DNA of 64,000 nt from Squalus acanthias (GCA_030390025.1 CM059425.1:260338001-260402000), one strand, 5' to 3'; counted from the stretch's first letter, positions 153 through 52,426 are shown. Made by a program: numbers and translations. The notes: a model not told the origin generated them from the letters alone.

Positions 153-224
153 CTGTCTCAGCTTGCTGTGACTCCGTAAAATTAACAACACTGTAAACAC
201 CATCACTTCCAAGTTCTTGTGGAT
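153..224 (-). CDS. Gene A tail exon T5 (recent duplicate of T2): DPQELGSDGVYSVVNFTESQQAET
   Basis: tgtgtctttgacag|AT...ACAG|gtaatt, 72 nt. Flank 147-905 is nearly identical to about 15593-16350. Confidence 0.75.
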
Positions 225-3200
225 CTGTCAAAGACACAAAAATGTAAGAAAATATGGAACATGGATTTTTTTGACTGGAGTAACATAGGTGAAAGGACCA
301 CCATACAGGACCCCATCGAGGCTGGAAAAATAGAGGAGAAAATGAGCTGAATCACAAAGTAATGATTCGGGAAACGCCAAACTGAGCTTTTAAAAACTCT
401 CGGAAAACTCTTAGCTTTTGAGTTTTGCATCTTATCCGTGGCTCAGTTGGTAGCACTCTCACCTCAATGTCGGAAGACCATGGGCTCAAGTCCCACTCCA
501 GAGATTTGAGCACATAATCCAGACCGACATCCCCAGTGCAGTGCTGAGGGAGTGCTGCACTGTCGGAGGTGCCGTCTTTCGGATGAGACTTAAATTGAGG
601 CCCCGCCTGCTCTCTCAGGTGGAGGTAACAGATCCCATGGCCACTATATTGAAGAAGAGCAGGGGAGTTCTCCCAGGTGTCCTGGCCGATATACATTTCT
701 CAAACCGAAAACAGATTATCTGGTCATTATCACATTGCTGTTTGTGGGAGCTTGCTGTGCGCAAATTGGCTGCCACGTTTCCCACATTACAACAGTGACT
801 CCACTTCAAAAGTCATTCATTGTATATGAAGCGTTTTGTGAAATCCTGAGGTTGTGAAAGGTGCGACAGAAATACAAGTTCTTTCTTTAAAAGCCTGTAG
901 ATTGTAGGACGGGCCGACTCGGGGGGGGGACGGGTCGACTCGGGGGAGACGGGACGACTCGGGGGGGACGGGTGGACTCGGGGGGGGCGGGGGAGGGACA
1001 ACTCGGGGGGGGACGGGACGACTCGGGGGGGACGGGTGGACTCGGGAAGGCGGGGGGGGGGACAACTCGGGGGGGACGGGACGACTCGGGGGGGACGGGT
1101 GGACTCGGGGGGGGCGGGGGGGAAACTCGGGGGGGACGGGTGGACTCGGGGGGGACGGGTGGACTCGGGTAGGACGGGTGGACTCGGGGGGGACGGGACG
1201 ACTCGGGTGGGACGGGAGGACTCGGGGGGGACGGGACGACTCGGGGGGGACGGGTGGACTCGGGGGGGACGGGTGGACTCGGGGGGGACGGGTGGACTCG
1301 GGGGGGACGGGTGGACTCGGGTAGGACGGGTGGACTCGGGGGGGACGGGACGACTCGGGTGGGACGGGACGACTCGGGTGGGACGGGAGGACTCGGGGGG
1401 GACGGGACGACTCGGGGGGGACGGGTGGACTCGGGGGGGACGGGTGGACTCGGGGGGGACGGGAGGACTCGGGGGGGACGGGACGACTCGGGGGGGACGG
1501 GTGGACTCGGGGGGGACGGGAGGACTCGGGGGGGGACTGGACGACTCGGGGGGGACGGGACGACTCGGGGGGGACGGGACGACTCGGGGGGGACGGGACG
1601 ACTCGGGGGGGACGGGACGACTCGGGGGGGGACGGGACGACTCGGGTGGGACGGGAGGACTCGGGGGGGACGGGACGACTCGGGGGGGACGGGACGACTC
1701 GGGTAGGACGGGTGGACTCGGGGGGGACGGGTGGACTCGGGGGGGACGGGAGGACTCGGGGGGGACTGGACGACTCGGGGGGGACGGAACGACTCGGGGG
1801 GGACGGAACGACTCGGGTAGGACGGGACGACTCGGGGTGGCCGGGACGACTCGGGGGGGACGGGTGGACTCGGGGGGGACGGGTGGACTCGGGGGGGACG
1901 GGTGGACTCGGGGGGGACGGGTGGACTCGGGGGGGACGGGTGGACTCGGGGGGGACGGGTGGACTCGGGGGGGACGGGACGACTCGGGGGGAACGGGACG
2001 ACTCGGGGGGGACGGGACGACTCGGGTAGGACGGGACGGATGGACTCGTGGGGGGATGGGACGACTCGGGGGGGACGGGACGACTCGGGGGGGACGGGTG
2101 GACTTGGGTAGGACGGGACGGGTGGACTCGGGGGGGACGGGACGACTCGAGGGGGACGGGTGGACTCGGGGGGGACGGGTGGACTCGGGGGGGACGGGTG
2201 GACTCGGGGGGGACGGGTGGACTCGGGGGGGACGGGACGACTCGGGGGGGACGGGACGACTCGGGTGGGACGGGTGGACTCGGGGGGGACGGGTGGACTC
2301 GGGGGGGACGGGTGGACTCGGGGGGGACGGGTGGACTCGGGGGGGACGGGACGACTCGGGTGGGACGGGTGGACTCGGGTAGGACGGGTGGACTCGGGGG
2401 GGACGGGTGGACTCGGGGGGGACGGGTGGACTCGGGGGGGACGGGACGACTCGGGGGGGGACGGGACGACTCGGGTGGGACGGGTGGACTCGGGGGGGGA
2501 CGGGTGGACTCGGGGGGGACGAGACGACGCGGGGGGGACGGGACGACTCGGGTGGGACGGGACGACTCGGGGGGGACGGGACGACTCGGGGGGGACGGGA
2601 CGACTGGGGGGGGACGGGAGGACTCGGGGGGGACGGGGGGACTCGGGGGGGACGGGTGGACTCAGGTAGGACGGGTGGACTCGGGGGGGACGGGTGGACT
2701 CGGGGGGGACGGGACGACTCGGGGGGGACGGGACGACTCGGGGGGGGACGGGTGGACTCGGGGGGGACGGGACGACTCGGGGGGGACGGGTGGACTCGGG
2801 GGGGGACGGGTGGACTCACGGGGGACGGGTGGACTCGTGGGGGACGGGACGACTCGGGGGGGACGGGACGACTCGGCGGGGACGGGAGGACTCGGGGGGG
2901 ACGGGAAGACTCGGGGGGGACGGGACGACTCGGGGGGGACGGGACGACTCGGCGGGGACGGGAGGACTCGGGGGGGACGGGAAGACTCGGGGGGGACGGG
3001 ACGACTCGGGGGGGACGGGACGACTCGGGGGGGACGGGTGGACTCGGGGGGGACGGGTGGACTCGGGGGGGACGGGACGACTCGGGTAGGACGGGACGGG
3101 TGGACTCGGGGGGGGACGGGACGTCTCGGGGGGGACGGGACGACTCGGGGGGGACGGGAGGACTCGGGGGGGACTGGACGACTCGGGTGGGACGAGAGGA

Positions 3201-9200: not shown

Positions 9201-12200
9201 TTGGGACATCCTGAGGACGTGATAGGCGCTGTCGAAATGCAAGTCTTTCTTTCCATCGTAGGGATAGGTTCCTGTCTCTGTAGCCGAGGCTTGCCAACCC
9301 TCCAGCATTGTCCGGGAGTCTCCAGGAATGAGAAACTAATCTCCAGGACATCGCTGCAAGAAACTCAGGAGACCGATCACCGGGGCATTCAAAAACACTT
9401 CTTCAAAAAAATAATTCTTTGGAGGCTTTAGTTATAACAGTATCGGAGTATCGGAAACCATCGGTGCCAAGTCACCTGTTCCTCCCGAGCTCGCTACCCT
9501 CACCACACGTTACCTCTCAAATTACTCACATACTGCATCCCAAAATATCATTTTCTGTCAGAAATCCATCTAATTTGTATTTGAATGAATCAACACTAAC
9601 CACTTCCACCGTCTCCCGAGGGAACCTGTTCCATGGATTGGCCACTCGCTCACTGAAATATTGGCCTCGATTTTAAACCCCCCACGACAGGTGGGAGAGG
9701 GTCGGGGGCGGAGTCTAACACGTCGCGCACGGCAGCGGATATTGGTGCGTCCAAGTGTCCCGCCGCGGGGAGGCGGGTCACCTTCATTAACATATTTAAA
9801 TCCGGCTCTCACCGCAATTGGGAGCCCGATTTAAAACTCACAGCTGCGGCGTGGGGTTCCCGGGGTTGGGAAACCCGGCAGTGAAAGGGAGGCGGGATCT
9901 ACCGGCCCCACAAGGCAAGTGACTTTTACAGCACTGCTTGTGGGCCAGGAGGAGCAGGAGTGCTCCCCGCTCCCCCCGGCCCCACAAGGAAGCCTTTGGC
10001 CTCCCCCGACGATCGAGGGCACCTCCTCCTCCCTGCCGACCTCTCTCTCCCCCCCCAGTCCCAATGGCCTCTCTCTCTCTCCCCCCCCAGTCCCAATGGC
10101 CTCTCTCTCCCCCCCAGTCCCAATGGCCTCTCTCTCTCCCCCAGTCCCAATGGCCTCTCTCTCCCCCAGTCCCAATGGCCTCTCTCTCTCCCCCAGTCCC
10201 AATGGCCTCTCTCTCCCCCAGTCCCAATGGCCTCTCTCTCTCTCTCCCCCCCAGTCCAATGGCCTCTCTCCCCCCCAGTCCCAATGGCCTCTCTCCCCCC
10301 CCAGTCCCAATGGCCTCTCTCTCTCCCCCACAGTCCCAATGGCCTCTCTCCCCCCCAGTCCCAATGGCCTCTCTCTCTCCCCCACAGTCCCAATGGCCTC
10401 TCTCCCCCCCCAGTCCCAATGGCCTCTCTCTCTCTCTCCCCCAGTCCCAATGGCCTCTCTCCCCCCCCAGTCCCAATGGCCCTCTCTCCCCCCCCAGTCC
10501 CAATGGCCTCTCACTCTCTCTCTCCCCCCCAGTCCCAATGGCCTCTCTCTCTCTCCCCCCAGTGCCAATGGCCTCTCTCTCTCTCTCCCCCAGTCCCAAT
10601 GGCCTCTCTCTCTCTCTCTCCCACCCAGTCCCAATGGCCTCTCTCTCTCTCTCCCCCCCCCCCCCCCCCCCCCCCCCCCCAGTCCCAATGGCCTCTCTCT
10701 CTCTCTCTCTCCCAGCCCCTTTCTCTTTCCCTCGGTCTCGATCTCTCTGCTCGGAATCTGGGTTGGAAATAGAATGAAAAAATGAGAATGAGGAGCTGCC
10801 ATTAAATGCAGCAGGACCTCTGTCCCCGGCCTTGCCGGGTTCTTCAGCCGTGTTCAGCCTCCCCCCCACCCCATAAATATCGGGGCCATTGTTTCCGCAG
10901 ATTAGTTTTGTATTTACCCCCATTGAAGCTCAGGCCGTGTCCTCTGGGTCGACTGTTCTGGACACGGTGAAACAGCTCGTCACAGGTATCTACTTCCTTC
11001 AGAATGCTAAAATGAGGAATTGTATCACCCCTCAACCTTCTCTGTCCCAGTGAGAACTTGCCCCATTTACATCATCACTCCTCATAATCCAACCCCTCAT
11101 TCATTCCATGTACTAGGCTGTAATTGACCAACACTGAGTGATGGCACAATGTAAGAACGTTCAAGGGCCATTCTTGTTGTCTTACCCGTCTGTTGTGCTT
11201 GAGGTGGTTTGGGATTGTTGACAGTGCTATAGAGAACATCTTCTCCCTCCTGCGCATCTATCAAGACACAATCCATTATCTCCATAGCTGCGTCATAGAC
11301 AATAGAATTAGGAAACCAAATGCTCCGTTACTGACAATCTGTTCCATTGAACTGATGATTACATGACAGGCTAGATCCCAGTCAGGACAATCCCATTGTC
11401 TGATCAACCCGAAGGCCATTTAACACAAGAGCAACAAAATGTGCTCAGCAATGACCTTTTAAGACAAAGAGTCAGGATTTTGTGTTTTTAAAACAAACTT
11501 GGGAGATGGGGCAGAATTTCTCCGGGATTTGATCCCCGCAATTTCACCGGGATCGCTCCCGTCGGTGACCTCTGCCACTGACCCCCACCGGAGTGTGCAG
11601 GGTGAGTGGGAGGTCATGTGTGTTCCACATATCACCACTATGGGTAGCCCCGTACACTGCCAGTCTATAAAAGGCACGCTGTCATGCCAATTGTAGATAT
11701 GTGAAAGGTTTACTCTTTAATTCAAGGTAAGAATCATGTTTGGCTGCTAGCTTTTTGCTGCTTGCTCTGTATTCACCATTCCTTACCTGTCACTGCTTGG
11801 TGGGGTCTTAGACATTTAACAGTGCTGTAGACAGGGAGACTCTCAGACTCCTGTGGATCTGTAAAGGACACAGGCAGTTACTTCCTTCTTACATCCTCAT
11901 CGGCAAAACTTTGATTCAGTTTAATGGTATAATAATAATGAATTCAACAACAACTTGTATTTATATTGTGCCTTAACGTTCTTAGTTCTTTGAGGAGGTA
12001 ACGAGCAGGGTGGATAAGGGTTAAACAGTGGATGTGGTGTATTTGGATTTCCAGAAGGCATTCGATAAGGTGCCACATAAAAGGTTACTGCATAAGATAA
12101 GAGCTCACGGAATTGGGAGTAATATATTAGCATGGATAGAGAATTGGCTAACTAACAGAAAGCAGAGAGTCGGGATAAATGGGTCATTTTCCGGTTGGCA

Positions 12201-15200: not shown

Positions 15201-18200
15201 TCAAACTCACGTCTCCGGATCATTAGGCCTCTGGATTACTAGTCTAGTGACATAACCACTATGCTACCGTACCCGATTTATGGCTCCTAGTTCTTGTCTC
15301 TCCCACAAATGGAAACATCTCCTTTATCACGATCCTATCAAACCCTTTCACAATGTTCAAGTATCAGGTCACCACCCAGTCTTCTTTCTTCCAATGAAAA
15401 GAGCCCCAGCCTGTTCAATCTTTCCTGATGGGTAGAACCCCTCAGTTCTGGTATCATTCCAGCAAATCTTTTTTTGTGCTTCCGATTCCCGAGTCCAAAT
15501 TGTTTCTGTAACTTGTGAGCAACAGTGGTCCCAGCACCGCTCCTTAACCGCTGCGCTATTTGCTGTGTTGTAGTTGCTTGTGGAGTCGCCTCATTACCTG
15601 TCTCAGCTTGCTGTGACTCCCTAAAATTAACAACACTGTAAACACCACCACTTCCAAGTTCTTGTGGATCTGTCAAAGACACAAAAATGTAAGAAAATAT
15701 GGAACATGGATTTTTTTGACTGGAGTAAAATAGGTGAAAGGACCATCGTACATGACCCCATCAAGGCTGGAAAAATAGAGGAGAAAATGAGCTGAATCAC
15801 AAAGTAATGATTTGGGGATCGCCAAACTGAGCTTTTAAAAACTCTCGGAAAACTCTTAGCTTTTGAGTTTTGCGGCTTATCCGTGGCTCAGTTGGTAGCA
15901 CTCTCACCTCAATGTCTGAAGACCATGGGCTCAAGTCCCACTCCAGAGATTTGAGCACATAATCCAGACCGACATCCCCAGTGCAGTGCTGAGGGAGTGC
16001 TGCACTGTCGGAGGTGCCGTCTTTCGGATGAGACTTAAATTGAGGCCCCACCTGCTCTCTCAGGTGGACGTAACAGATCCCATGACCACGATATTGAAGA
16101 AGAGCAGGGGAGTTCTCCCAGGTGTCCTGGCCGATATACATTTCTCAAACCGAAAACAGATTATCTGGTCATTATCACATTGCTGTTTGTGGGACCTTGC
16201 TGTGCGCAAATTGGCTGCCACGTTTCCCACATTACAACAGTGACTCCACTTCAAAAGTCATTCATTGTATATGAAGCGTTTTGTGAAATCCTGAGGTTGT
16301 GAAAGGTGCGACAGAAATACAAGTTCTTTCTTTAAAAGCCTGTAGATTGGAGGACGGGTGGACTCGTGGAGGACGGGTGGACTCGGGTAGGACGGGTGGA
16401 CTCGGGGGGCTGGGGGGACGGGACGACTCGGGTAGGACGGGTGGACTCGGGTAGGACGGGTGGACTCGGGGGGGCTGGGGGGACGGGACGACTCGGGTAG
16501 GACGGGTGGACTCGGGTAGGACGGGTGGACTCGGGTAGGACGGGACGACTCGGGTAGGACGGGTGGACTCGGGGGGGACGGGTGGACTCGGTGGGGATGG
16601 GTCGACTCGGGGGGGACGGGTGGACTCGGTGGGGACGGGTCGACTTGGGGGGGGGACGACTCGGGGGGGGACGACTCGGGGGTGGGGGGGGACGGGTGGA
16701 CTCGGGGCGGGGGATGGGTGGACTTGGGGGGACGGGACGGGTGGACTTGGGGGGGGGGGGGGACGGGTGGACTCGGGGGGGGAGAGGGGGGGACGGGTGG
16801 ACTTGGGGGGGGACGACTCAGGGGGGGAGGGTGGGACGGGACGACTCAGGGGGGGGACGGGTGGACTCGGGGGGGGGACGGGGGGACGGGACGACTCGGG
16901 GGGGGATGACTCGGGGGGGGGGGGAATATGACTCGGGGGGGGGGGGACGACTCGGGGGGGACGGGACGACTTGGGTAGACAATAAGTTCCATATTTTTGT
17001 TGTTTAGGAAACGAACGGGATCGATTTCCATCCCTGTTTTCGGGTGGGAACAGGGCCGTAGACAGATCAAAATTGGAGTGCAGAACACAGCGCCCCATTT
17101 CAACCGTCGTTCCACCGGCCGCTATTTAGATTGGGGCCTTCAGGTAGGCTGTCGAGGCTCGTGCCCGAAACAGGTGGGAGCCTCATTATACAAAGTAAAT
17201 CGAGGGTCCTCTGATGTCTCGGAAACCTCGATGCACCTTTCAAGTAGCAATGGGTCAGGACATCGATCAGCCTAACGGTCTGAAAGGGACCGCCGGAGGC
17301 TGCTCCAAAACCAGGGCAGTTAGAGTTTTATATCAGCATTAATGTTCCTCCTGGCCCCACAAAGATCAGCCCACCCAATGCCCTGTCGCCCTGTCGCCCT
17401 CCCCCGGGATCGCCCCCTTCCCCCGCTCCCCTACCAGGTCCCCACTTGCTCTGCTCCGTGGAGGAGCCGCTCCATTTCCCGATTGGCCAGTTGCTCCGAT
17501 CGGGCGGGCAACTCCTCTCAAATATGCGAATCTGGCCCGACCATCAAAATGGTTCAGTCCTCCGACCGCTTTCATTGGGCGGGAGGGCAGCGGGCTCGCT
17601 CCGACTACCCCCTGCCCAATGAAAGGGCTCGCACCAAAGTCGGCCCCAATGGGTTAGAATGGGAGACCAATCTTAGTTCCAACACAGGGATGGTGAAGGG
17701 AGGGTGGGGGGGGGAAGAGGTTAGAGAATGATGGGCCGAGACCAGGAGGAGTGGGCCTGGTGGGACCACAGCGAGAGCGGAGCAGTTAAAAGCAACAGTC
17801 CCGAGCGGCAGGAGCCCGAGACCGGGAGGAGTGGGCCTGGTGGGACCGCAGCGAGAGCGGAGCAGTTAAAAGCAACAGTCCCGAGCGGCAGGAGCCCGAG
17901 ACCGGGAGGAGTGGGCCTGGTGGGACCGCAGCGAGAGCGGAGCAGTTAAAAGGAGCAGTCCCGAGCGACAGGAGCCCGAGACCGGGAGGAGTGGGCCTGG
18001 TGGGACCGCAGCGAGAGCGGAGCAGTTAAAAGCAACAGTCCCGAGCGGCAGGAGCCCGAGACCGGGAGGAGTGGGCCTGGTGGGACCGCAGCGAGAGCGG
18101 AGCAGTTAAAAGGAGCGGCAGCAACTCAACAGAGGCAGCTTTTGAAAAAGTGACGTCAGAGTAAAAAAAGTGACGTCGGCACAAGGGAAGGAGCTGATTG

Positions 18201-27200: not shown

Positions 27201-30200
27201 CCAATATGGGTAGTTGGAGTTAAGATACAGATCAGCCATGATTGAATTGAATGGCGAAATAGTCTCGCGGGGCTGAAAGGCCTCCTCCAGTTCCTATGTT
27301 CTTCCTATGTAATCTAGAAGAAGCCCACAGTTCTAACATGATGTCCCACACCAGTAGAGCTTCTATTGTGACGCTTACCTCTCTTCAACCTCCAGATAGT
27401 AAAACCAATTAAAAGAAAGAAGATCATTAAAATGGCGGGCCCACTGTAGAGGGCGATGTTCAACTTGTCCTTGTCATCAGCGGGGAAGTGGATCTGACGG
27501 ACGTCACTCCCGTGTTCATTTACAGCCACACAGCTGTAGTTCCCTCTCAGCGTTGGGTTCAGAATCTCTCCCACAGTTTGATGTTTGTCCGGCACTCGTG
27601 TGACTGTCGTGCTACTGCTGTCCACGGGCAGTGCGCTGTTTTCAGGGTCGATCAATGCGATGTTTGCGGGTGGCTCCCCTTCAACCTTGCACACGATGGT
27701 GTCTCCAGTTATATTGTCGGTCACAACCGACAGCTCCAGGATGGTGGCTGGGGCTTGGGGAGGAAAGAGACAATGAGTTAACTCAATCTAATTAATCTTT
27801 ATTAAACGGTCCGTGGTGACAACGTCCATTACGTGGCACTGAGAAACACGTGAGCATGGAGAGGTGACACCCAACAGGAGATTGGATTGAAATATTCAGA
27901 GAGCAAGTGGACTCTGATTGGAAAGGGACATGAGTTTGATGTTAACGGAGGAGGCGGATGGAATTAGCCTGAGTGAGTGGATCTGAACAACACAGCGGCC
28001 AGGAAATTGGGCTGCCTAAATGCCCTCCTAAACTGTTACAGGCGTCTCTCAGGTCTCAGCTCCTCACTGGGAGCGAATTTGCTCTTGTGTTTGTTCAACG
28101 TGATTTTATCACCTTCACCATATCATTGAGGTAGATGTTTCCTTACCAACAACCTGTAGTCTCATCACATCCTGAGTCACGTTTTCTCTTCGCTCATTCT
28201 CGATGTGCACGTGACAGAAGTAGTCGCTGGTGTCGTTCAGCCCCAGGTCCCTCATCCTTATGGAGGCGTCTCCTTGGGTTGTGTTTCCGATCAGCTCATA
28301 TCGATCTCCTTGATTTACACTAACTGTGTCAGTATAGTGAGAACCAGCGGCGAGGGAACGAGTGTGATTAAAAACAGTGGACTCTTGGCATGGATTCTCC
28401 TTCATCCAGAGGACAGTGATGGAGCTCGGATACCGGCCAGGGGGACTGAAGGTGCAGGGCAGTGTGGCAGAATCTCCCTTCTTCCCAGTCACTGGCCGGT
28501 TATTGTTCTTATCAGCTGAGGTAGAGAAGGGTTTTAAAGAATGGACATTATTCATTAGCACAGAGCATTAAACACAGTTTATACAACATATATGTCCCCT
28601 GTGCACTGTGAGGTTTGCTCTGACGGCAGTGCAGGCAGACAACAGCAGCTTACATTTAAACAGCGACTTTAAGACAGTAAAACATTTCCTTCCTATTCAC
28701 TCTCTCAAAACCCTTCATAATTTTGACAACCTCTACTAATTCTCCCCATAACATTCTCTGCTCTGAGGAGAACAATCTCAGTTTCTCCAGTTTCTCCACA
28801 CAACAGAAGTGCCTCATCACTGGAACCATTCTAGTAAATCTCCTCTGCACCCTCTCCAAGGCCTTGACATCCTTCCTAAAGAGTCCGGAATCGGACACAA
28901 CACTCCAGCTAGGGCCTAACCTGTATTTTATAAAGGTTTAGCATAACTTCCTTGCTTTTGTACTCTAAACAGCTCTTCACAATCATCAACCTCACTCATT
29001 AATAATTCTCTTTATCCTACTCCAGTCCCACACCATTCTGATTGACTCTTAACTGCTCTCTGAAGTGGCTCAGTTGTATCAGCGCCTTCTCAGGGCAACG
29101 AGGGAAGGGCAATAAATGTCGGCCTTGGCAGCAACGCCCACATCACCAGAACGAGTAAAACAAATACACACGGTTGTGATTGGATTATTTTACAGCACAA
29201 CCTTATTTCTAGTTTGAATTATTCCTTACTTCTTATCTCGAGAACTCCATGGTTGAGTTGAAATTTTCCTTCTTTATCGTCCTTGAAATCCACACGACAA
29301 ATGTACGTTTTCTTTGTGTCCGCTTTGTTCAGCTGTTTGATGATGATAGAAGCGTCGTTCTCCCTCGGGTTTCCCAACACTCGGTAGCGCTCGTCTACAT
29401 TCAGGTGGATCTGATTCTTAAACCCATTGCTCTGCGAGTTTAGCGACGGATAATTTGTGTAATTATAAACCACTCCTTTCCGAGTTCTGTTCCAGGTGAC
29501 GGTGATGTTGCCTTTATATCCAGGGTGAGGGTGAGTGAACTTGCAGAATAGAACAGTAGGCTTCCCTTCCCTAGCCATCACCCTATCTGGGGTCTCCATG
29601 CTCCAGTTATTCACACTGTGACCTGTGAGGACACACAGATGTCATGTTAACACTTGACTGAGCCCAAGAGTCAGACACTCCATGGAGGAAGCACGACACA
29701 CCCTGTACTTTCTGACATTCTAATGTCTATCTGAAACTGTGCTGAATTATGGCCAGTTGTGTGCTGTGTGTCCACACTCAATAGGAAGTGGGTTGGAGTG
29801 CCTCCAGCCCATTGCACAGAGACTAAAGAAATAGAACCGGAGAGGCCTGCAGCACCGGAGGTCGTTCCACACCCCCTGTCTAAGCCTGCTCTTTCCTGGA
29901 GCCATCTTATCCCATCAGAGTATTCTGCCTTTAATACAAAAGAAAAGAAAGACTTGCATTTATATAGCATCTTTCACGACCTCAGCCTGTCCCAAAGCCC
30001 TTTACAACCAATGAGGGGTCTGGACAGAGTAGACAGAGAGACACTGTTCCAGTTGGCGGAAGGGTTGAGAACCAGAGGACACAGATTTAAAGTGATTGGC
30101 AAAAGAACCAAAGGCGACGAAAGAAAAAACTATTTTACGCAGCGAGCGGTTAAGATGGGGAATGCACTGCCTGAAAGGGTGGTGGAGGCAGACTCAATCA

Positions 30201-30677
30201 CATCTTTCAAAAGGGAGTTGGATAATTATCTGAAGGAAAACATTTTGCAGGTCTACGGGGAAAGGGCGGGGGAGTGGGACTCGATCAGAGCCAGCACGGG
30301 CTCGACGGGCCGAAAGGCCTTCTTCCGTGCTGTAACCATTCTATGATTCTATGATTCGATGATTCTCTGATTCTGAGTATTTATTGAAGTGGAGTCCCTG
30401 TTGTAATGTAGGAAACACGGCAGCCAATTTGTGCACAGCAAGCTCCCACAAACAGCAATGAAATAAATGGCCATGTCACCAGTTTTAGGTGTTGGTTGAG
30501 GGATAAATATCGTGCCTGTGCCAACTCTTTGAAATACCTCTCTAATTATTTCCACTCCCCTGCTCTTTCCCCATAGCCCAGAAGAAAGAAAGAAAATGGG
30601 TTCCTGCCTCCTCTTGGTGAATACGTACGTTCTGCTGAGATGGCCAGGGCGAGTGCACAAACCAAAATGCACAGCAT
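153..30677 (-). CDS. siglec15-like: Gene A: Siglec-15-like receptor (leader-V-V-C2-TM plus multi-tyrosine-motif tail), putative inhibitory form, 3'-partial. Exons 30629-30677, 29230-29622, 28147-28515, 27379-27753, 25093-25164, 15598-15669, 11787-11858, 11186-11257, 153-224
   Basis: All nine exons have GT donors and the eight internal ones have AG acceptors. They join in phase 1 with no stops (49, 393, 369, 375 and 5x72 nt). V1 motifs WSM..P..V, CKFTHPH, RYRVLGNPRENDAS, YICRVDF and HGVL resemble Siglec-15 as I recall it. No stop codon is reached in the window. Confidence 0.85.
436..888 (+). mobile_element. tRNA-derived SINE (SacSINE1/DeuSINE-like)
   Basis: A-box gtggctcagttgg, B-box-like ctcaagtcc, L2-like tail. 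Family name is from recall. Confidence 0.75.
910..8757. repeat. G-rich ~20-bp minisatellite (GACTCGGGGGGGACGGGTG/GAC variants), about 7.8 kb
   Basis: Visible periodicity. Explains the GGTGRLGGD and PPESSRPP ORFs in multiple frames. Confidence 0.97.
8757..8985 (+). mobile_element. L2-like LINE 3' fragment
   Basis: ctctggaattccctccctaaacctctc...aaaaccta, ending in (gtt)n. Similar pieces at 13990-14240(-), 25365-25850(+) and 33200-33296/44902-45465(-). Confidence 0.65.
9663..10887. mobile_element. Non-autonomous PIF/Harbinger-type DNA transposon inserted in a minus-strand CR1 fragment
   Basis: Imperfect TIRs ggcctcgatttta / taaatatcggggcc, 3-bp TSD ATT. Removing it restores CR1 KTNLRKQYFSERVANPWN. 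Confidence 0.75.
10038..10715. repeat. Minisatellite (CCCCAGTCCCAATGGCCTCTCTCT)n inside the MITE
   Basis: Visible tandem unit with variable CT and C tracts. Confidence 0.95.
11186..11257 (-). CDS. Gene A tail exon T4: DAQEGEDVLYSTVNNPKPPQAQQT (canonical ITIM VLYSTV)
   Basis: tgtgtcttgatag|AT...ACGG|gtaaga, 72 nt. Matches [ILVS]xYxx[ILV]. Confidence 0.82.
11787..11858 (-). CDS. Gene A tail exon T3: DPQESESLPVYSTVKCLRPHQAVT (YxxV)
   Basis: tgtgtcctttacag|AT...ACAG|gtaagg, 72 nt. Not in the ORF track. Confidence 0.8.
12000..13990 (+). mobile_element. 5'-truncated CR1 LINE, RT region, interrupted by a MITE
   Basis: [28 protein letters not shown]; in-frame stops; CR1 3' tail. Confidence 0.93.
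12357..13117. mobile_element. GC-rich Harbinger-type MITE, family 1
   Basis: TIR GGGGGAAAAATT / AATTTTTACCCC, TSD AAA. Near-identical to 22208-22980. Confidence 0.85.
14340..14800 (+). mobile_element. Degenerate CR1 3' fragment
   Basis: VQSWAPHLRKDILAL and RRLRSDLI. Similar fragments at 24170-24480, 26485-27313, 28680-28970(-) and 30010-30370. Confidence 0.8.
14870..15275 (-). mobile_element. tRNA-derived SINE
   Basis: Minus-strand head ggtagcatagtgg...gtttgaatccc. Tail gggcaataaatgctggcct is shared with 60-130. Confidence 0.65.
15598..15669 (-). CDS. Gene A tail exon T2: DPQELGSGGVYSVVNFRESQQAET (YxxV)
   Basis: tgtgtctttgacag|AT...ACAG|gtaatg, 72 nt. Confidence 0.8.
15881..16333 (+). mobile_element. 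Duplicate of the SINE at 436-888
   Basis: Near-identical sequence at offset about 15445. Confidence 0.75.
16350..16975. repeat. Short, more degenerate copy of the same G-rich minisatellite
   Basis: Same unit at the paralogous position after the duplicated SINE. Confidence 0.93.
17730..23140 (+). mobile_element. Full-length decayed CR1 LINE: 5' 80-bp tandem monomers (17735-18117), ORF1 from 18384 (Zn-finger plus SGNH/GDS esterase), ORF2 APE-RT with stops and frameshifts
   Basis: Cys-rich N-terminus and VGDSIVRG in ORF1; ITETW, GDFN and FADD in ORF2; (tatgactc) tail. Confidence 0.93.
22208..22980. mobile_element. Harbinger-type MITE, family 1, second copy
   Basis: Same TIRs, TSD TCA, within CR1. 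Confidence 0.85.
23141..24033. mobile_element. Harbinger-type MITE, family 2
   Basis: TIR GGGGGAGAAATTCAG / CTGAATTTTTCCCCC, TSD TAT, inserted in a CR1 microsatellite tail. Confidence 0.85.
25093..25164 (-). CDS. Gene A tail exon T1: DPREPGGVPVNSVANDTVSQQAET (Asn at the Tyr position)
   Basis: tgtgtctttgatag|AT...ACAG|gtaatg, 72 nt, homologous to the other tail exons. Confidence 0.75.
25533..25689 (+). mobile_element. Penelope-like mini-insertion with inverted terminal arrangement
   Basis: 12-bp duplication tcctcctttaag (25521-25532 and 25690-25701). Perfect 29-bp inverted repeat at 25567-25595 and 25656-25684. Contains a hammerhead motif. Confidence 0.75.
25598..25636 (+). ncRNA. Minimal type-I hammerhead ribozyme motif (Penelope-type)
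   Basis: tcac-CTGACGA-a-ggagc-agc-gctcc-GAAA-gc-TT-gtga: core boxes, stem II, stem I tcac/gtga and palindromic AAGCTT stem III. Confidence 0.65.
27379..27753 (-). CDS. Gene A exon 4: C2-set Ig domain plus uncharged TM (IALYSGPAILMIFFLLIGFTIW-RLKR)
   Basis: Acceptor tcctccccaag, donor AGAG|gtaagc, 375 nt. Motifs CKVEGEPP and GNYSCVAVNEHG. Confidence 0.9.
28147..28515 (-). CDS. Gene A exon 3: second V-set Ig domain (His in place of the Siglec Arg)
   Basis: Acceptor ctacctcag, donor gtaagg, 369 nt. Motifs GDSATLPCTF, ITVLW, RYELIGN..QGDASI, DTSDYFCHV. Confidence 0.92.
29230..29622 (-). CDS. Gene A exon 2: Siglec-type V-set Ig domain 1 with essential Arg (CRVDF)
   Basis: Acceptor ctcacag, donor gtaagg, 393 nt. 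B-strand Cys, core Trp, YxC followed by Arg (codon 29294-29296). Confidence 0.92.
30629..30677 (-). CDS. Gene A exon 1: signal peptide MLCILVCALALAISAE
   Basis: ATG at 30677, 16 mostly hydrophobic codons plus 1 nt, donor GTACGT. Splices in frame to exon 2 (C+GT=Arg). Not in the ORF track. Confidence 0.85.
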
Positions 30678-30714: not shown

Positions 30715-30845
30715 CCGACCACAGACTGTGGAACTGCGACGGATCCTCGCTATTTCTTGTTACTTCCTTCTTGAATCTGGGATTGCCAAAGAAAATAAAA
30801 ATACTTGTGATATTTACCAGCCAGCTTCAGATGAGGAAGTCTCTT
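30715..30845 (-). promoter_or_regulatory. Putative proximal promoter/5'UTR of gene A with ETS/PU.1-like GGAA sites and a RUNX-like TGTGGT; paralogous region about 52465-52590
   Basis: GAGGAAGT near 30833, ACTTCCT near 30762 and GACCACA at 30717, present in both paralogs. These are short motifs, so support is weak. Confidence 0.3.
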
Positions 30846-40375: not shown

Positions 40376-41100
40376 ATCTTAGCAGGTTCCTCTAATGAGG
40401 CCATATGGGTAGAACTTAAAAACAAAAAGGGGGCAAGTACTTTGCTGGGAGTGTACTATAGGCCCCAAACAGTCAGCGGGAGATAGAGGAACAGATATGT
40501 AGGCAAATTTCAGAGAAGTGTAGAAATAATAGGGTAATAATAGGAGGGGATTTCAACTTCCCCAATATTAACTGGGATAGTCAGAGTGTGAAAGGCTTAG
40601 AGGGTGCGCAATTCTTAAAGTGCATCCAGGAGAGCTTTTTGAGCCAGCATGTAGAAAGTCCATCAAGAGAGGGGGCGGTACTGGACCTAATTCTAGGGAA
40701 TGTAGCCGGGCAAGTGGTAGAAGTGTTAGTAGGAGAGCATTTTGGTGACAGTGACCATAATTCGGTGAGATTTAAGGTAGTCATGGAAAAGGACAAAGAT
40801 GGACCGGAAATAAAGGTTCTAAATTGGGGGAAGGCCGATTTTAACATGATAAGGCAGGATCTGGCCAAAGTGGACTGGGATCAGCTTTTTGTAGGAAAAT
40901 CCATATCAGAGCAGTGGGAGTCTTTCAGAAAGGAAATAGAGAGAGTACAACGGCAGCATGTTCCCGTAAAGGTCAAGGGTGGGACCAACAAGTCCAGGGA
41001 ACCCTGGGTGTCAAGGGATATACGAGAATGGATTAGGAAAAAAAGGAAGGCTTTTGGCAGATACAAAGGACTAAAAACAGTGGAAGCCCTAGAGGAGTAT

Positions 41101-45900: not shown

Positions 45901-46779
45901 ATCAACACCCTTTCGTGTAGGTTGCAGTAATATGTAGTGGAATGTTTATAGTATGGCACTACTATAAACATCCCAAGGCTTTACGTCAATCTTGAACATT
46001 GGCTATTGCTAGGGTGATCTGTAATTCTTTCTCTCTCTCTTTCTCTTTCCAATGATGTCAATCACGTTTTTTGCTCTCCATTGTAAGCTTTTTATTTCGA
46101 CTGGCATTAAATTGACAGCAAGACCAAATCTTTTGAAACAATTTTGAATAAGCTTATTAAACACTCACACTCATGCACATCAAAACACTAGCCTACTGAT
46201 ATCCTATGGACTCTGCTCGATGACAACAGGTAAGGTAATGGGTTAGATTTAAACAGACTAGTACTTCCCTGAGTCAAGCAATGCACGCGGCCTTTTTCCT
46301 TGGTGAGTTTCGATGGTGAGTTTCGATGGGTTTTCGATGCTGTCTCTGTGGGGGTTATCCTGTTATGCAGGTTTCCTTTGTTAAGTTTCGCGCCGTTGCC
46401 TTAAGCTCCGCTCCCAGGGAGATCCATACCCATCAAATTAATCTTTATTACATTCATCTTATATTAATAGTCTCGAGTCCATCACACATAGAAAACATAT
46501 ATTTTTATTCTTACACCATTGAATGAGCAAAACACAAACACTTTTCAGAAGCTGAATTTGCCGAGTTCCCTGTACCAACAAAACCCTCCATTGTCTCAAT
46601 CGTCAATGATGAAACTTTCCACCGATCCTCCGCCAATGTTATGGCAGGAGATGAATTCCCATCACTCTCTCCTTGATCATTTGATGCTGTATTACGAGGG
46701 GCTCTCAAACACAGAAGTCTCGATTGGAATTTCAATTGAGCACTAAGAATGAGAAATGCCTTATCTTTTCTTTCAGAAG

Positions 46780-47261
46780 TTACTTTACCTGTTCCGCATC
46801 ATCAGAACCAGCAGCTGAAAACATTACTATCTGTGAAGATGCCACAGTATTACCATGATGTCCCACGCCAGTAGAGCTTCCATTGTGAATCTTCAACCTC
46901 CAGATAGTCAAAGCAATTGAAAGAAAGAAGATAATTGAAATGGAGGTTCGAATGTAGAGGTCGATGTTCAACTTGTCCTTGTCATCAGCGGGGAAGTGGA
47001 TCTGACGGATGTCACTCCCGTGTTCATTTACAGCCACACAGCTGTAGTTTCCTCTCAGCGTTGGGTTAAGAATCTCTCCCACAGTTTGATGTTTGTCTGG
47101 CACTCGTGTGACTGTCGTGCTACTGCTGTCCACGGGCAGTGCGCTGTTTTCAGGGTCGATCCATGTGATGTTTGCGGGTGGCTCCCCTTCAACCTTGCAC
47201 ACGATGGTGTCTCCAGTTATATTGTCGGTCACAACCGATAGATCCAGGGTGGTGGCTGGGG
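46780..47261 (-). CDS. Gene B exon 4: C2-set domain, TM LYIRTSISIIFFLSIALTIW, Tyr-free tail
   Basis: Same acceptor as gene A. Arg codon at 46948-46950. 3' end uncertain because of possible cryptic donors near 46853 and 46788. Confidence 0.82.
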
Positions 47262-50200
47262 CTTGGGGAGGAAAGAGACAATGAGTTAACTCAATCTAAT
47301 TAATCTTTATTAAATGGGCCGTGGTGACAACGGCCATTACGTGGCACTGAGAAACACGTGAGCATGGAGAGGTGACACCCAACAGGAGATTGGATTGAAA
47401 TATTCAGAGAGCAAGTGGACTGGCTCCTGATTGTAAAGGGAAATGAGTTTGATGTAAACGGAGGAGGCGGATGGAATTAGCCTGAGTGAGTGGATCTGAA
47501 CAACACAGCGGCCTGGAAATTGGGCTGCCTAAATGCCCTCCTAAACTGTTACAGGCGTCTCTCAGGTCTCAGCTCCTCACTGGGAGCAAATTTGCTCTTG
47601 TGTTTGTTCAACGTGATTTTATCACCTTCACCATTGTAGGGGGTGATGGTTTGTGTCAGCTTCACCTCTGACTTCTGAGCGGTTTGAATCGCTCCCACTC
47701 CCTTGGTTCTAGACCTTGGACTTATTTGGGGGTTGTGATAAAAAGTGCAGCAGACAACTGAGTTTGATGCAAGAACTTTGATCTTTATTTAAGAAAGTAA
47801 AACACAACACAAACACTCTTAACACTCTAAAAGTGGGGAACACTTCGGTACAAGCGAGGGAAATAACATAAGGAGAATACTTCACCCCTCCCAATCCCAC
47901 TTCACTGGCTAGGTTGGACTCCAGAGGACCAGGGATGATACTCACCAGAATCCTTGACAGTTGGGTTAGTTGGCGGTTTTGGGGTTCACTCTATATGTCG
48001 GTTGGTGTCTGCTGTACCCCGTACGCGGTAGACGACTTCAACTGTGTATCTGGTCAGTCTTCGCGAGTCCGCTGATGCGGTAGGGTGCGTATTGGATCTA
48101 TCAGGTGAGTACCCACTTTTCTTTGGTTTAGAAGTAGGGTTTAGAGGTTTTTAAGGGAAAATCTTACCCAGGGGTAAATCAGGAGTAGATTGTAGAGTGG
48201 AAACTTTGTGGATCTTCGGGTTTTCTTCGAGTTGGTTTTCTTTGGTCGCGGTGGCCCAAATATTGGTACTTGGTGTTCGGTTGGTTGTTTCGTGAGGGCC
48301 TTGTTGCCGCGAGGTGTCCGATGGTCACTGAGGCGGTCGTTCTGGTTTCTTCACGTGTCGGCCTACTTTGTTGGATGGTCTGGCCTTCGAGCTGTCGACC
48401 TCCTGGCTGGACATGGAACGCTGAACGGTGGTGTTGTAGGACTGTGTTGCGGAGAATGCCTCTGTGGATGTCTTCTTGTTCTTCCTTCCTCTTCTTCTTT
48501 TTCAGGTTGAGAACGGGCCTTCAATTATACCCATTTAAGCTCCCTTATCTGCGCGCCAAATCAGGTCCCGGTCTTTGTTAGATTTTGGCGGGCTCGTTAA
48601 CGGTAACTGGTTTGTTAAGGTGTGAAGTGGTTCCGGGATGGCCCCATCCTGTCGATTTGCCACTTAATCAGAGATGATTGTCCTCATGTTTTGGGTTTCT
48701 TGACTGGGCCTAGGATTTCTATAGAGTAGGCCGAAGTAATCTGTTTTATGCATGTTTTAATGGGCTCTGTAACTTGGGGTGGAGACTGTTTTTCCTTGGG
48801 TTTATTGTAAGGATGTTAATGTCTGACAGGGGCCGATTTACACTCCCAGCGAGGTCATGCGGTTCCCCAGACAGTTCCCAATAGCTCCAATACCCAAACT
48901 GTTTTTACAGAGGTTGAGCCCACCTCCCTTTACAGCCTTTTCTCCCTTACAAGTCCAGACATGTCTTTTAAAATACCAAATCTTGGGTTTTGCTCTAAAA
49001 CGTCCTTCGGTTAAGCCCAATGCATTTCACCACCCTGTAATAGTTAGAAAAGAGTCCAAAGTCTTTTTCCTTAGGGTTTGTCTTCGAGTTTTGGGGGATC
49101 TGTGAATTTTGAGAATCTTACACCATATCATTGACATAGATGTTTCCTTACCGACAAGCTGTAGTCTCATCACATCCTGAATCACGTTTTCCCCTTGTTC
49201 ATTCTCGATGTGTACGTGACAGAAGTAGTCGCTGGTGTCGTTCAGCCCCAGGTCCCTCATCCTTATGGAGGCGTCTCCTTGGGTTGGGTTTCCGATCAGC
49301 TCATATCGATCTCCTTGATTTACACTAACTGTGTCAGTATAGTGAGAACCAGCGGCGAGGGAACGAGTGTGATTAAAAACAGTGGACTCTTGGCATGGAT
49401 TCTCCTTCATCCAGAGGACAGTGATGTTGTTCAGATACCGGCCAGGGGGACTGAAGGTGCAGGGCAGTGTGGCAGAATCTCTCTTCATCCCAGTCACTGG
49501 CCGGGTATTGTTCTCATCAGCTGAGGTAGAGAAGAGTTTTAAAGAATGGACATTATTCATTAGCACAGAGCATTAAACACAGTTTATACAACAAATATGT
49601 CCCCTGTGCACTGTGAGGTTTGCTCTGACGGCAGTGCAGGCAGACAACAGCAGCTTCCATTTAAACAGCGACTTTAACACAGTAAAACATTTCCTTCCTA
49701 TTCACTCTCTCAAAACCCTTCATAATTTTGACAACCTCTACTAATTCTCCCCATAACATTCTCTGCTCTGAGGAGAACAATCTCAGTTTCTCCAGTTTCT
49801 CCACACAACAGAAGTGCCTCATCACTGGAACCATTCTAGTAAATCTCCTCTGCACCCTCTCCAAGGCCTTGACATCCTTCCTAAAGAGTCCGGAATCGGA
49901 CACAACACTCCAGCTAGGGCCTAACCTGTATTTTATAAAGGTTTAGCATAACTTCCTTGCTTTTGTACTCTTAACAGCTCTTCACAATCATCAACCTCAC
50001 TCATTAATAATTCTCTTTATCCTACTCCAGTCCCACACCATCCTGATTGACTCTTAACTGCTCTCTGAAGTGGCTCAGTTGTATCAGCGCCTTCTCAGGG
50101 CAACGAGGGAAGGGCAATAAATGTCGGCCTTGGCAGCAACGCCCACATCACCAGAACGAGTAAAACAAATACACACGGTTGTGATTGGATTATTTTACAG

Positions 50201-52426
50201 CACAATCTTATTTCTAGTTTGAATTGTTGCTTACCAGTTATCTCGAGAACTCCATGCTCGAGTTCAAATATTCCTCCCTTTACGTCCTTGAAATCCACAC
50301 GACAAATGTACATCTTGTCTGTATCCCCTTTCCTCAGCTGTTTGATGATGATAGAAGCGTCGTTCTCCCTCGGGTTTCCCATCACTCGGTAGCGCTCGTC
50401 TACATTCAGGTGGATCTGATTCTTAAACCCATTGCTCTGCGAGTTTAGCGACGGATAATTTGTGTAATTATAAACCACTCCTTTCCGAGTTCTGTTCCAG
50501 GTGACGGTGATGTTGCCTTTATATCCAGGGTGAGGGTGAGTGAACTTGCAGAACAGAACAGTAGGCTTCCCTTCCCTAGCCGTCACCCTATCTGGGGTCT
50601 CCATGCTCCAGTTATTCACACTGAGACCTGTGAGGAAACACAGATGTCATGTTAACACTTGACTGAGCGCAACAGTCAGACACTCCATGGGGGAACCACG
50701 ACACACCCTGTACTTTCTGACATTCTAATGTCTATCTGAAACTGTGCTGAATTATGGCCAGTTGTGTGCTGTGTGTCCACACTCAATAGGAAGTGGGTTG
50801 GAGTGCCTCCAGCCCACTGCACAGAGACTAAAGAAATAGAACCGGAGAGGCCTGCAGCACCGGAGGTCGTTCCACACCCCCTGTCTAAGCCTGCTCTTTC
50901 CTGGAGCCATCTTATCCCATCAGAGTATTCTGCCTTTAATACCAGATAACAGGAACTTGCATTTCTGCAGTGTCTTTCACAGCCTCAGCACATCCCAAAA
51001 ACTATTTTACGCAGCGAGCGGTTAAGATGGGGAATGCACTGCCTGAAAGGGTGGTGGAGGCAGACTCAATCACATCTTTCAAAAGGGAGTTGGATCAGTA
51101 TTTGAAGGGAAAAAAATTGGCAGGTCTATGGGGAAAGGGCGGGGGAGTGGGACTGGATCAGAGCCAGCACGGGCTCGACGGGCTGAAAGGCCTTCTTCCG
51201 AGCTGCAACCATTCTATGACCCTATGGGGGAAAAATTCAGTATCGCCCCGTTTGCGGCGTAATTATCGGCTGGGCGCAAAGATTAGCGTCTGGCGCTAAT
51301 TATCACCACCGACTGCAAACTTGATTTTTATCGCCCCTGCAGGTGATTGGAGCGCGAAATCAGGCGCTTCACACATGTCTTAAGGCACAAAGGCCGAGGA
51401 GCGAGGCGCTAACTCAGAGCGCTGGCGAAGCTCATGTGATGTCAGTCAGCAATGGAACACACACACAATGGCCCCGGCCAGTTCTTAAAGGGGAGGGTTG
51501 ATCTTGCTCTCCATCCACACCCTGCTCATTGCAGCCTTGAATCTCAGCCTGGAGAGACCTGTACATCAAATCTGCTGGAAAGAACAATGGAGAGGACCAG
51601 GGAAAGAGCTCAGAGTGCAACCCCCCACAGTCTCTTCTAAATCGATACAAGGAAGGGCAAATAAAAATGAACCTGCAAAGTGCTGCTCAGTACCCAAAAC
51701 TCCTTCACACAGCATTGAATCTCTCCAGAAGTCTCTGTCTCTCTCTCTCAGAATGCATGGTTCAAAAATGTCACCAACAAAAAACAGCAGGAAGTGGTCG
51801 CCTTTAAATAGCGCTCCCCCAGTCCCTGCCTGACTGCAAAACGCTCCCCTCAACCTGTCGTTACTAGTGGCAGGCGGTAAGGCAGGGGGCACTACTCAAT
51901 ATCTGCTCCGGGGTGCTACCGGGGCGTTGCGCACTCGACTGACGTCACGATCTGCCGGTGCAGGAGATCGTGGCGGCAGTGTTTAGCGCCGCCGCAAAAT
52001 GTCTAGTTAATTTCGCGCGTCCGGGCGCTAGTTGCTTTGCGCCTCATTAGCGCCCTCTTAAGGCGCTAACTGGAGGCGCCCCCAACTGAATTTTTCCCCT
52101 ATGATTCTATGATTCTCTGATTCTAAGTATTTTTGAAGTGGAGTCCCTGTTGTAATGTAGGAAACGCGGCAGCCAATTTATGCACAGCAAGCTCCCACAA
52201 ACAGCAATGAAATAAATGGCCATGTCACCAGTTTTAGGTGTTGGTTGAGGGATAAATATCGTGCCTGTGCCAACTCTTTGAAATACCTCTCTAATTATTA
52301 CCACTCCCCTGCTCTTTCCCCATAGCCCAGAAGAAACAAAGAAAATGGGTTCCTGCCTCCTCTTGGGGAATACATACGTTCTGCCGAGATGGCCAGGGTG
52401 AGTGCACAAACCAAAATGCACAGCAT
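46780..52426 (-). CDS. siglec15-like: Gene B: Siglec-15-like receptor (leader-V-V-C2-TM with Arg, short tail), putative activating paralog. Exons 52378-52426, 50235-50627, 49152-49520, 46780-47261
   Basis: Exons 1-3 match gene A in size (49, 393, 369 nt), phase and splice sites, and there are no stops. Exon 4 reads through the deleted donor to TAA at 46780-46782. Confidence 0.85.
47635..49122 (-). mobile_element. Solo LTR (about 1.49 kb) in gene B intron 3
   Basis: TG...CA ends, 4-bp TSD CCAT, empty site in gene A near 28118. AATAAA on the minus strand at 47784-47789. Confidence 0.88.
49152..49520 (-). CDS. Gene B exon 3: V-set domain 2
   Basis: ctacctcag|...|gtaagg, 369 nt. Confidence 0.92.
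50235..50627 (-). CDS. Gene B exon 2: V-set domain 1 with essential Arg
   Basis: ctcacag|...|gtaagc, 393 nt, YICRVDF retained. Confidence 0.92.
51226..52099. mobile_element. Harbinger-type MITE, family 2, in gene B intron 1
   Basis: TIRs and TSD TAT. Absent from the paralogous gene A site near 30345. Confidence 0.85.
52378..52426 (-). CDS. Gene B exon 1: signal peptide MLCILVCALTLAISAE
   Basis: ATG at 52426, donor GTATGT, paralog of 30629-30677. Confidence 0.85.

Follow-up and report, generated by a model that had tools for sequence, protein, structure and literature searches.

Can a receptor gene with an inhibitory tail give rise to an activating partner by copying only part of itself? The question is raised by a stretch of 64,000 nucleotides (nt) of Squalus acanthias DNA (GCA_030390025.1 CM059425.1:260338001-260402000; 0 N, repeat-rich), referred to here as the window. 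It contains two tandem genes, A and B, which resemble the gene of sialic acid-binding Ig-like lectin 15 (Siglec-15), lie head to tail on the minus strand and differ in their transmembrane (TM) segments and tails. We give a little better than an even chance to the reading that gene A encodes an inhibitory-type receptor and gene B a putative activating-type partner with an Arg in its TM segment, both belonging to a Siglec-15-derived multigene family. The anatomy of the two genes and their kinship with Siglec-15 are firm.

Two Tandem Genes in a Duplicated Block

One block of the window is present twice. Self-comparison by BLAST aligns 31705-27317 (gene A) with 54944-46835 (gene B) in five pieces that are 92.7-97.1% identical, and three insertions (about 47635-49116, 51227-52098 and 53194-54694) are found only in the B copy. 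Homology between A and B was also searched for beyond 27317/46835, where A has a repeat-like insertion, and none was found. Six-frame open reading frames (ORFs) together with Pfam gave three large Ig exons per copy (V-set, V-set, and C2-type with TM), so that a leader, V1, V2 and an exon for C2 and TM (C2+TM) are common to A and B. Exon borders were read by eye; AG acceptors and GT donors in phase 1 are present at all exons of gene A, at its five tail exons (T1-T5) and at the exons of gene B, the exception being the donor of the B TM exon. Gene A was compared with XP_067838218.1 (P0003), a protein of 536 amino acids (aa) from Heptranchias perlo that automatic annotation names 'sialic acid-binding Ig-like lectin 12 isoform X3': by tblastn against the window, all gene A exons including T1-T5 are collinear with it. 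Gene A extends from 30677 down to 153 and off the left window edge, and gene B spans 52426-46780. The exons common to both are as follows, a caret marking the splice point.

30629..30677, minus strand: gene A leader, MLCILVCALALAISAE, donor C^GTACGT, phase 1; from tblastn of P0003 and splice sites.
29230..29622, minus strand: gene A V1; Pfam V-set E 1.1e-09 (38.9 bits); solved structure of Siglec-15 (7zoz) E 3.6e-19; F-strand Arg in YICRVDF.
28147..28515, minus strand: gene A V2; Pfam V-set E 1e-15 (58.3 bits); 7zoz E 5.2e-12; His at the Arg position.
27379..27753, minus strand: gene A C2 and uncharged TM, donor AG^GTAAGC, phase 1; from tblastn of P0003.
52378..52426, minus strand: gene B leader; from splice sites and tblastn of P0003; RNA joint 50625->52376 (cut +2) in runs X1, X3 and X6 (see below).
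50235..50627, minus strand: gene B V1; Pfam V-set 35.9 bits; 7zoz E 1.1e-17; F-strand Arg kept.
49152..49520, minus strand: gene B V2; Pfam V-set 51.7 bits; RNA joints 47261->49152 and 49522->50237.
46780..47261, minus strand: gene B C2+TM exon, read through to the stop at 46780-46782; Pfam I-set 26.2 bits; read-through RNA contigs.

The Pfam cut-offs were 26 bits for V-set, applied to both V exons, and 23.7 bits for I-set; the Ig-family matches of the gene A C2+TM exon all lay under their cut-offs. Another leader considered for gene A, MAIYFIAVCGSLLC at about 30474, was rejected: it has no usable donor, and P0003 puts the leader at 30677-30629. Rfam gave 0 matches in the whole window.

In total A and B differ by 172 substitutions in 4251 aligned columns: 2 of 49 nt in the leader, 23 of 393 in V1, 17 of 369 in V2 and 20 of 372 in C2+TM, the last with a 9-nt deletion in addition. 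The exons (62/1183) are slightly above the non-coding columns (110/3068, 3.6%). These counts and the self-comparison bear out an original prediction for this locus, which had described two tandem genes with near-identical leader, V1, V2, C2 and introns. Could they be a single gene, doubled by the assembly or seen as two haplotypes? An identity of 93-97% over the duplicated blocks would suit such a duplicate, but we hold it to be very improbable: both copies lie in one gap-free window, 19.5-21.7 kb apart, their insertions and 3′ flanks differ, the substitutions include two patches in which 18-19% of sites differ, and there are two transcript classes.

Kinship with Siglec-15

Among solved structures, the V domains given a 7zoz E value above met Siglec-15 first, and the structure that follows it is CD33, at 1e-05 to 1e-06 (E 1.4e-05 for gene A V1). 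The Arg of YICRVDF in V1 of both genes is aligned with the Arg of YFCRVEF in Siglec-15 and of YFFRM in CD33, which we take to be the essential sialic-acid-binding Arg; V2 has a His there. The motifs THPH...GN(I/L)T, GNPR.ND and Y.CRV(E/D)F, together with this F-strand Arg of V1, are common to Siglec-15, A and B. When gene A V1 was used in a HMMER scan over 1.84 billion representative proteins, 123 proteins were found at E <=1e-3, 35 at <=1e-10 and 9 at <=1e-30. The names among 20 matches checked include 'sialic acid-binding Ig-like lectin 15' in Callorhinchus, Mobula, Amblyraja, Protopterus, birds and mammals. P0003 is also among the matches, with 57% identity over both V stretches.

A quick maximum-likelihood tree was made of 96 V-domain rows (envelopes covering >=95 query residues) and 128 columns from 62 proteins, namely the first 60 matches plus P0134 and P0136. 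V1 of A, V1 of B and V1 of P0003 form one set, with a support of 95 by the Shimodaira-Hasegawa-like approximate likelihood ratio test (SH-aLRT). This set is nested in a larger one of 13 chondrichthyan rows (SH-aLRT 98), whose members include P0006 (Callorhinchus) and P0008 (Mobula), which have a Lys in the TM (Lys-TM), and P0005 (Narcine), whose tail carries an immunoreceptor tyrosine-based inhibitory motif (ITIM). In the same tree the V2 domains of A and B group with V2 of P0003 (SH-aLRT 93). The deeper forks lack resolution because there are so few columns. A check by protein search and phylogeny, made here with HMMER and the tree, thus groups V1 of A and B with Siglec-15-type proteins, and the 7zoz matches, the named relatives and the tree together uphold the Siglec-15-like ancestry that had been proposed.

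There are also differences. Mammalian Siglec-15 is a V-C2 protein with a TM Lys, coupled to DAP12 or DAP10, whereas A and B have V-V-C2 ectodomains, like the Siglec-15-type proteins of chimaera, ray and lungfish. The mid-TM Lys and short tail of Siglec-15 are found in neither gene: the TM of A is uncharged and ITIM/YxxV exons come after it, and the TM of B contains an Arg close to its outer end. P0003 has the exon order, the domain set and the 24-residue DPQE...VYS... tail modules of gene A and is 69% identical to it in V1, 70% in V2 and 78% in C2+TM, but it comes from a different species or is a paralogue. The name 'Siglec-12' was given to it automatically; the V domains of A and B are far closer to Siglec-15 than to CD33-type Siglecs.

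The 3′ Part of Gene B

How does gene B come to have a different end? The TM of gene A, IALYSGPAILMIFFLLIGF, is uncharged, and its best 19-residue hydropathy window scores 2.24; in the TM of gene B, LYIRTSISIIFFLSIALTI (LYIRTSIS...), the best window contains an Arg and scores 1.91. This Arg sits 3-5 residues inside the outer TM end. Three features define this part of the gene.

46948..46950, minus strand: gene B TM Arg codon CGA, which is GGG (Gly) in gene A; not listed as changed in the read-through contigs (46947-46953).
46889..46891, minus strand: 9-nt deletion in B relative to A, the missing letters being GAGGTAAGC, which include the TM-exon splice donor; from the alignment.
46444..46779, minus strand: B-specific 3′ region, with AATAAA at 46509 and 46449; contigs reach at least 46600.

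As the TM-exon donor is deleted, gene B reads on from WRLK into a tail of 36 residues with 0 Tyr. The Arg-containing TM and the short Tyr-free tail that had been attributed to gene B are therefore both confirmed, by the translation and by the donor deletion. No stop or frameshift occurs in any gene B exon, and the splice sites are intact apart from the deleted donor. A new donor, CAG^GTAAAG, lies just ahead of the gene B stop but is unsupported, the RNA contigs running straight through it. The 3′ side of gene B (45100-46835) has no copy elsewhere in the window, 46444-46779 is the probable 3′ untranslated region (UTR), and tblastn of P0003 revealed nothing like a tail exon in the stretch that separates B from A.

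Receptors coupled to FcR-gamma, among them Fc-alpha-RI, LILRA and GPVI, have a basic residue at this place in the outer TM. We infer that gene B is of the activating type, because a basic residue lies in the outer third of its TM, because all Tyr motifs are lost, and because a read-through form with no listed change of the Arg codon persists in expressed relatives.

The Tail Exons of Gene A

Gene A continues beyond its TM exon with five tail exons.

25093..25164, minus strand: T1, 72 nt, DPREPGGVPVNSVANDTVSQQAET, no Tyr; P0003 residues 391-414, E 3.5e-06; tag^AT acceptor, GTAAT donor.
15598..15669, minus strand: T2, 72 nt, GVYSVV; from tblastn of P0003 and splice sites.
11787..11858, minus strand: T3, 72 nt, PVYSTV; P0003 residues 438-463, E 7e-05.
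11186..11257, minus strand: T4, 72 nt, canonical ITIM VLYSTV; from tblastn of P0003 and splice sites.
153..224, minus strand: T5, 72 nt, GVYSVV, duplicate of T2; from tblastn of P0003.

Each of them encodes 24 residues with phase 1 at both ends, and being symmetric in this way they behave as modules. Their borders are alike, the acceptor, (c/t)ag^AT, being rich in pyrimidines and the donor being ACxG^GTAA; T4 possibly has an alternative acceptor (cgcag) about 30 nt upstream. T2 and T5 lie inside an 88% identical duplicate (148-1569 and 15593-16975). Residues 487-498 and 523-536 of P0003 found no match within the window by tblastn, so the end of gene A probably lies past the left window edge. 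Of the original description of gene A, the uncharged TM and the YxxV/ITIM tail stand, by the TM sequence and by collinearity with P0003, but the gene is incomplete in the window. Judged by these predicted features, it is reasonable to regard gene A as an inhibitory-type receptor.

The ITIM pattern occurs 30 times in the window, and VLYSTV (11237) alone falls inside a tail exon. ICYLHL (633) and ICYVHL (16078) were rejected as tail ITIMs: they lie in 114-aa ORFs, 352-696 upstream of T5 and 15797-16141 upstream of T2, that are not collinear with P0003 and presumably resemble a short interspersed element. The other 28 of the 30 matches were rejected as lying in repeats or out of order.

Gene A may itself have a second ending. 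If its TM-exon donor is skipped, a short Tyr-free tail, KRHNRSSTGVGHHVRTVGFF, follows and then a stop (window 27379-27317), and a tail-less isoform through intronic termination is conceivable. AATAAA and ATTAAA are both absent between 27385 and 26900, past the TM exon.

Uneven Divergence of the Two Copies

Two patches hold a disproportionate share of the differences between A and B. One, the V1 F-G patch, is formed by the final 99 nt of V1 (A 29230-29328, B 50235-50333), which encode the F strand with its Arg, the F-G loop and the G strand; here 19 of 99 sites differ (19%). The other, the TM patch, starts at the first TM codons and reaches as far as the homology does (A 27317..27453, minus strand; B 46835-46961). 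It differs at 23 of 128 aligned sites (18%), and outside both patches the figure is 130 of 4024 (3.2%). The patch limits were picked after viewing the data; a permutation scan is independent of that choice, and in it the observed maximum of 19 per 100-column window was reached in 0 of 2000 permutations. At the protein level, 13 of 130 residues differ in V1, 12 of 122 in V2 and 7 of 99 in C2 before the TM. When 40 amino-acid differences were polarised with P0003, 11 were derived in A and 16 in B, with 13 ambiguous (p = 0.44); V1 and V2 together have 8 derived changes in A and 7 in B, and C2+TM has 3 and 9. By its V1 and V2 changes the predicted ectodomain of gene B appears free of excess decay. 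The mosaic similarity of A and B fits gene conversion, as in Siglec-11/16, for which PMC5701461 describes it.

The last 102 letters of V1, which take in the F-G patch, are likewise too divergent to align in the long-tail RNA contigs described below, and the patch would be a hypervariable ligand-contact patch of the family. This bears on an alternative in which the duplication is recent (about 3%) and the V1 F-G and TM patches were copied from other paralogues or are under positive selection. The hypervariability among paralogues, seen in contigs too different to align on B, would suit it, and so would the shortness (99 and 128 columns) and sharp bounds of the patches. Against this, both patches are equally diverged, as expected from one older split, and the B-specific 3′ region is about 96% alike in expressed B-like contigs, which argues that the B-type end is older than a divergence of 3% suggests. 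We consider a recent duplication of this kind rather unlikely.

Spliced RNA from Genes of Both Types

Logan contigs of runs X1 and X6 (study P1) and X2 and X3 (study P2) were aligned to 46600-52500 at 90% likeness. Contig joints occur at the predicted exon borders (47261->49152; 49522->50237, the canonical junction apart from one mismatch; 50625->52376, cut +2) and carry CT..AC ends, which are GT..AG on the minus strand; the contigs therefore derive from spliced RNA. In the read-through class, X1 record 1 (1107 nt) contains 90 nt of V1, then V2, C2 and TM, and continues unspliced to 46634, so that it passes the gene B stop and ends 200 nt after the A/B homology does. This read-through piece recurs in X2 record 7 (46602-46982), X3 record 14 (46600-47023) and X6 record 20 (46681-46893). 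In the long-tail class, X6 record 21 (2180 nt) contains V1, V2 and C2, its aligned part stops at 46980 and more than 1 kb follows unaligned, and X3 record 15 (977 nt) contains V1, V2 and C2 and ends inside C2 at 47147. Spliced mRNAs of the long-tail type and of the read-through (B) type thus exist; the two classes co-occur in X3 and X6, are about 3-5% of aligned letters off A and B, and have contig depths by which expression cannot be ranked.

From which genes do these mRNAs come? The contigs derive from paralogues or related species, because none equals A or B. Those of the read-through class differ from gene B at about 4-5% of aligned letters. Translated by hand, their changes in or near the TM are Asp->Ala, Ser->Thr, Ile->Phe, Ser->Leu, Phe->Leu, Ser->Leu, Ile->Ser, Ala->Gly and Leu->Phe, with Arg->Lys in the cytoplasmic WRLK. 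Positions 46947-46953 (Ile-Arg-Thr) are not listed as changed, and since 18 of the 19 differences of X2 record 7 are listed, its Arg codon cannot be the A-type GGG, which is two steps away. One 9-letter block of the read-through contigs probably lies at the gene B deletion. When checked against RNA, transcription of gene B is thus supported in part: B-type spliced read-through mRNA is present in two studies, but the exact gene B copy is unmatched.

A Working Pair or a By-Product?

In the reading that we prefer, gene A, with its leader, Arg-bearing V1, V2, C2, uncharged TM and tail of repeated 24-residue mini-exons, would recruit SHP-type phosphatases through its ITIM. Gene B would be a copy of the promoter-to-TM part only, lacking tail exons, with the TM-exon donor lost and a 3′ UTR of its own, and would signal via an Asp-bearing adaptor with an ITAM (immunoreceptor tyrosine-based activation motif). 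An Arg in the position found in gene B would point to the FcR-gamma or DAP12 adaptor class. Both receptors may see similar ligands through V1, and gene conversion would keep the ectodomain exons alike but not the V1 F-G region or the TM, which would remain distinct.

Several observations weigh against this pairing. Of the four Tyr motifs of gene A only that of T4 is a canonical ITIM, those of T2, T3 and T5 being YxxV, and T1-T5 were assigned to gene A by homology and collinearity with P0003 rather than by reads of gene A. The Arg of gene B is near the membrane edge and could be tolerated there with no partner. The ratio of non-synonymous to synonymous change (dN/dS) between A and B is 0.88 overall (46 non-synonymous, 15 synonymous; V1 0.90, V2 0.95, C2+TM 0.90), which is compatible with neutrality, and the intact frame of B is weak evidence, as 31 random substitutions would leave no stop with a probability of 0.34 and no frameshift would arise with one of about 0.25, jointly about 0.08. 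A search of sequencing runs with the gene B TM exon (503 nt, 54 sampled words) found shared words in 10 runs of 3 studies, none recorded as RNA, the best shares being 0.28 and 0.26. No contig equals B: the read-through pieces differ from it by 19-28 letters and 18 extra letters over 381-628 nt (9 extra rather than 18 in X6 record 20), and contigs can be chimeric across paralogues sharing 31-mers.

Some of these observations would be expected if a partial tandem duplication had left gene B behind as a truncated by-product, which would be a young pseudogene or else a tail-less or decoy receptor that gives no signal. Both the TM Arg and the loss of the donor would then be decay and no adaptation, and gene A and the Lys-TM paralogues would be the only working receptors. 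The dN/dS of 0.88 and the low information in the frame (about 0.08) agree with this, as does the failure to detect an exact gene B copy in four RNA-type runs, with word shares <=0.28. In the C2+TM exon 9 amino-acid changes are derived in B and 3 in A, several of those in B putting Ser/Thr in place of a hydrophobic residue, and B has three insertions where A has none. On the other side, the remaining splice sites of B are intact and its exons free of stops and frameshifts, its V1 and V2 changes are symmetric with those of A (7 and 8), and the differences are uneven, clustered in two patches. Moreover, B-type spliced mRNA with the B-specific 3′ sequence and no listed Arg-codon change is present in two studies, which indicates that at least one other gene or species keeps this form. 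We accordingly think it rather unlikely that gene B is such a by-product, and a receptor pair remains our preferred interpretation.

Relatives in Cartilaginous Fishes and Other Paired Receptors

Is the pair peculiar to this locus? P0006, P0008 and P0009 are V-V-C2 proteins with a TM Lys, and P0003 and P0005 have ITIM-like tails. A protein search with C2+TM+tail of gene B gave 2 proteins from 22 candidates. P0134 (Pristiophorus japonicus, UPI00398E5146) is 82% identical over 62% of this query and has a Siglec-15-type Lys-TM; P0135 (Callorhinchus) has an uncharged TM, a TM-proximal IIWRVKRG and two VIYSVV motifs. Such single-exon searches reach proteins of 0.55-1.75 times the query length, full-length relatives being outside that range, and within it TM+tail of gene B (80 aa) gave no candidate. 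Callorhinchus LOC103174418 and LOC103188796, Mobula hypostoma Siglec-15, Pristiophorus UPI00398E5146 and Narcine XP_069798446.1 belong to the same V-V-C2 ectodomain family as A and B.

Lys-TM relatives are thus known from Callorhinchus, Mobula and Pristiophorus and ITIM-tailed forms from Callorhinchus, Narcine and Heptranchias, so that inhibitory and activating flavours of a Siglec-15-like ectodomain already coexist across cartilaginous fishes. The activating-type relatives keep the ancestral mid-TM Lys, whereas gene B has its Arg elsewhere in the TM and would add an Arg-TM form built on an inhibitory-type backbone. An independently evolved inhibitory/activating pair, as claimed in the original prediction, is accordingly supported as to its two architectures but is no isolated invention, since Lys-TM and ITIM relatives exist. 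A second V domain is not particular to the pair either, fish Siglec-15-type proteins being V-V-C2.

Paired receptors among Siglecs are defined in passages of PMC6288428, and PMC5701461 and PMC4042635 treat the primate pairs Siglec-5/14 and Siglec-11/16. Like A and B, these are adjacent genes with near-identical ligand-binding exons, one partner having an ITIM and the other a charged TM and short tail, and with patchy similarity of the gene-conversion kind. The primate pairs are CD33-related, whereas A and B are of the Siglec-15-like lineage. The fish pair also differs in that its activating-type partner B comes from a copy without tail exons and TM-exon donor, and in that the tract of high identity takes in the C2+TM exon up to the TM codons. 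In openly searchable papers, subscription papers being outside their range, no literature was found on Siglec-15-like paired receptors of cartilaginous fishes; none was found on their ITAM adaptors (DAP12, FcR-gamma) either, including in passages of PMC4016189.

On this basis we propose, tentatively and with less than even confidence, that cartilaginous fishes expanded Siglec-15 into three flavours (Lys-TM, ITIM-tailed and Arg-TM tail-less), with inhibitory genes repeatedly spawning activating counterparts via promoter-to-TM partial duplication and gene conversion sparing the V1 F-G region. Siglec-15 is regarded as one of the few conserved single-copy Siglecs, purely DAP12-coupled, and the evolution of paired receptors usually reflects the exploitation of an inhibitory receptor by pathogens. 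If the proposal is true, the logic of an inhibitory receptor with an activating counter-trap, as in primate Siglec-5/14 and 11/16, would have arisen independently more than 400 million years earlier, on another Siglec backbone and by a visible stepwise route. Siglecs would then have evolved paired receptors repeatedly, and long before the primate cases. The steps visible at the locus are the loss of tail exons by partial copy, the loss of a splice donor, the change of a TM Gly to Arg, and local divergence around the sialic-acid Arg. Related gene models are already present in automatic annotations.

Repeats in and around the Two Genes

Apart from the two genes, the window contains only repeats. 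A 1.49-kb element occurs in two copies, 47635-49122 and 53194-54681, that are 96% identical and in opposite orientation, with short inverted ends (TGTAGG...CTTACA) and short target duplications. Of the two genes B alone carries it, one copy in the V2/C2 intron and the other upstream of the leader, and since many RNA-type contigs pile on it, it is a repeated, transcribed element. The T4-T5 intron of gene A holds a 7.8-kb G-rich minisatellite (923-8724; period 19, about 405 copies, 87% matches, consensus GGGGGGGACGGGAGGACTC), which yields long spurious ORFs on both strands; the paralogous stretch by T2 (about 16262-16975) is far shorter.

A GC-rich direct duplicate of about 770 nt (12356-13117 and 22207-22980; 97% identical) lies in long introns of gene A (T1-T2/T3), with fragments of long interspersed nuclear elements (LINEs) flanking it. 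An inverted LINE pair, 35413-38139 and 57485-60210, has reverse-transcriptase ORFs of 704 and 869 aa, and its identity of 99.3% over 2727 nt suggests that it was inserted or duplicated very recently; the window also contains several older copies from this family at scattered places. Tandem arrays occur at 39703-40375, 17736-18112 and 10040-10701, with periods of 83, 80 and 27, and the 27-nt array is CT-rich and gives long low-complexity ORFs.

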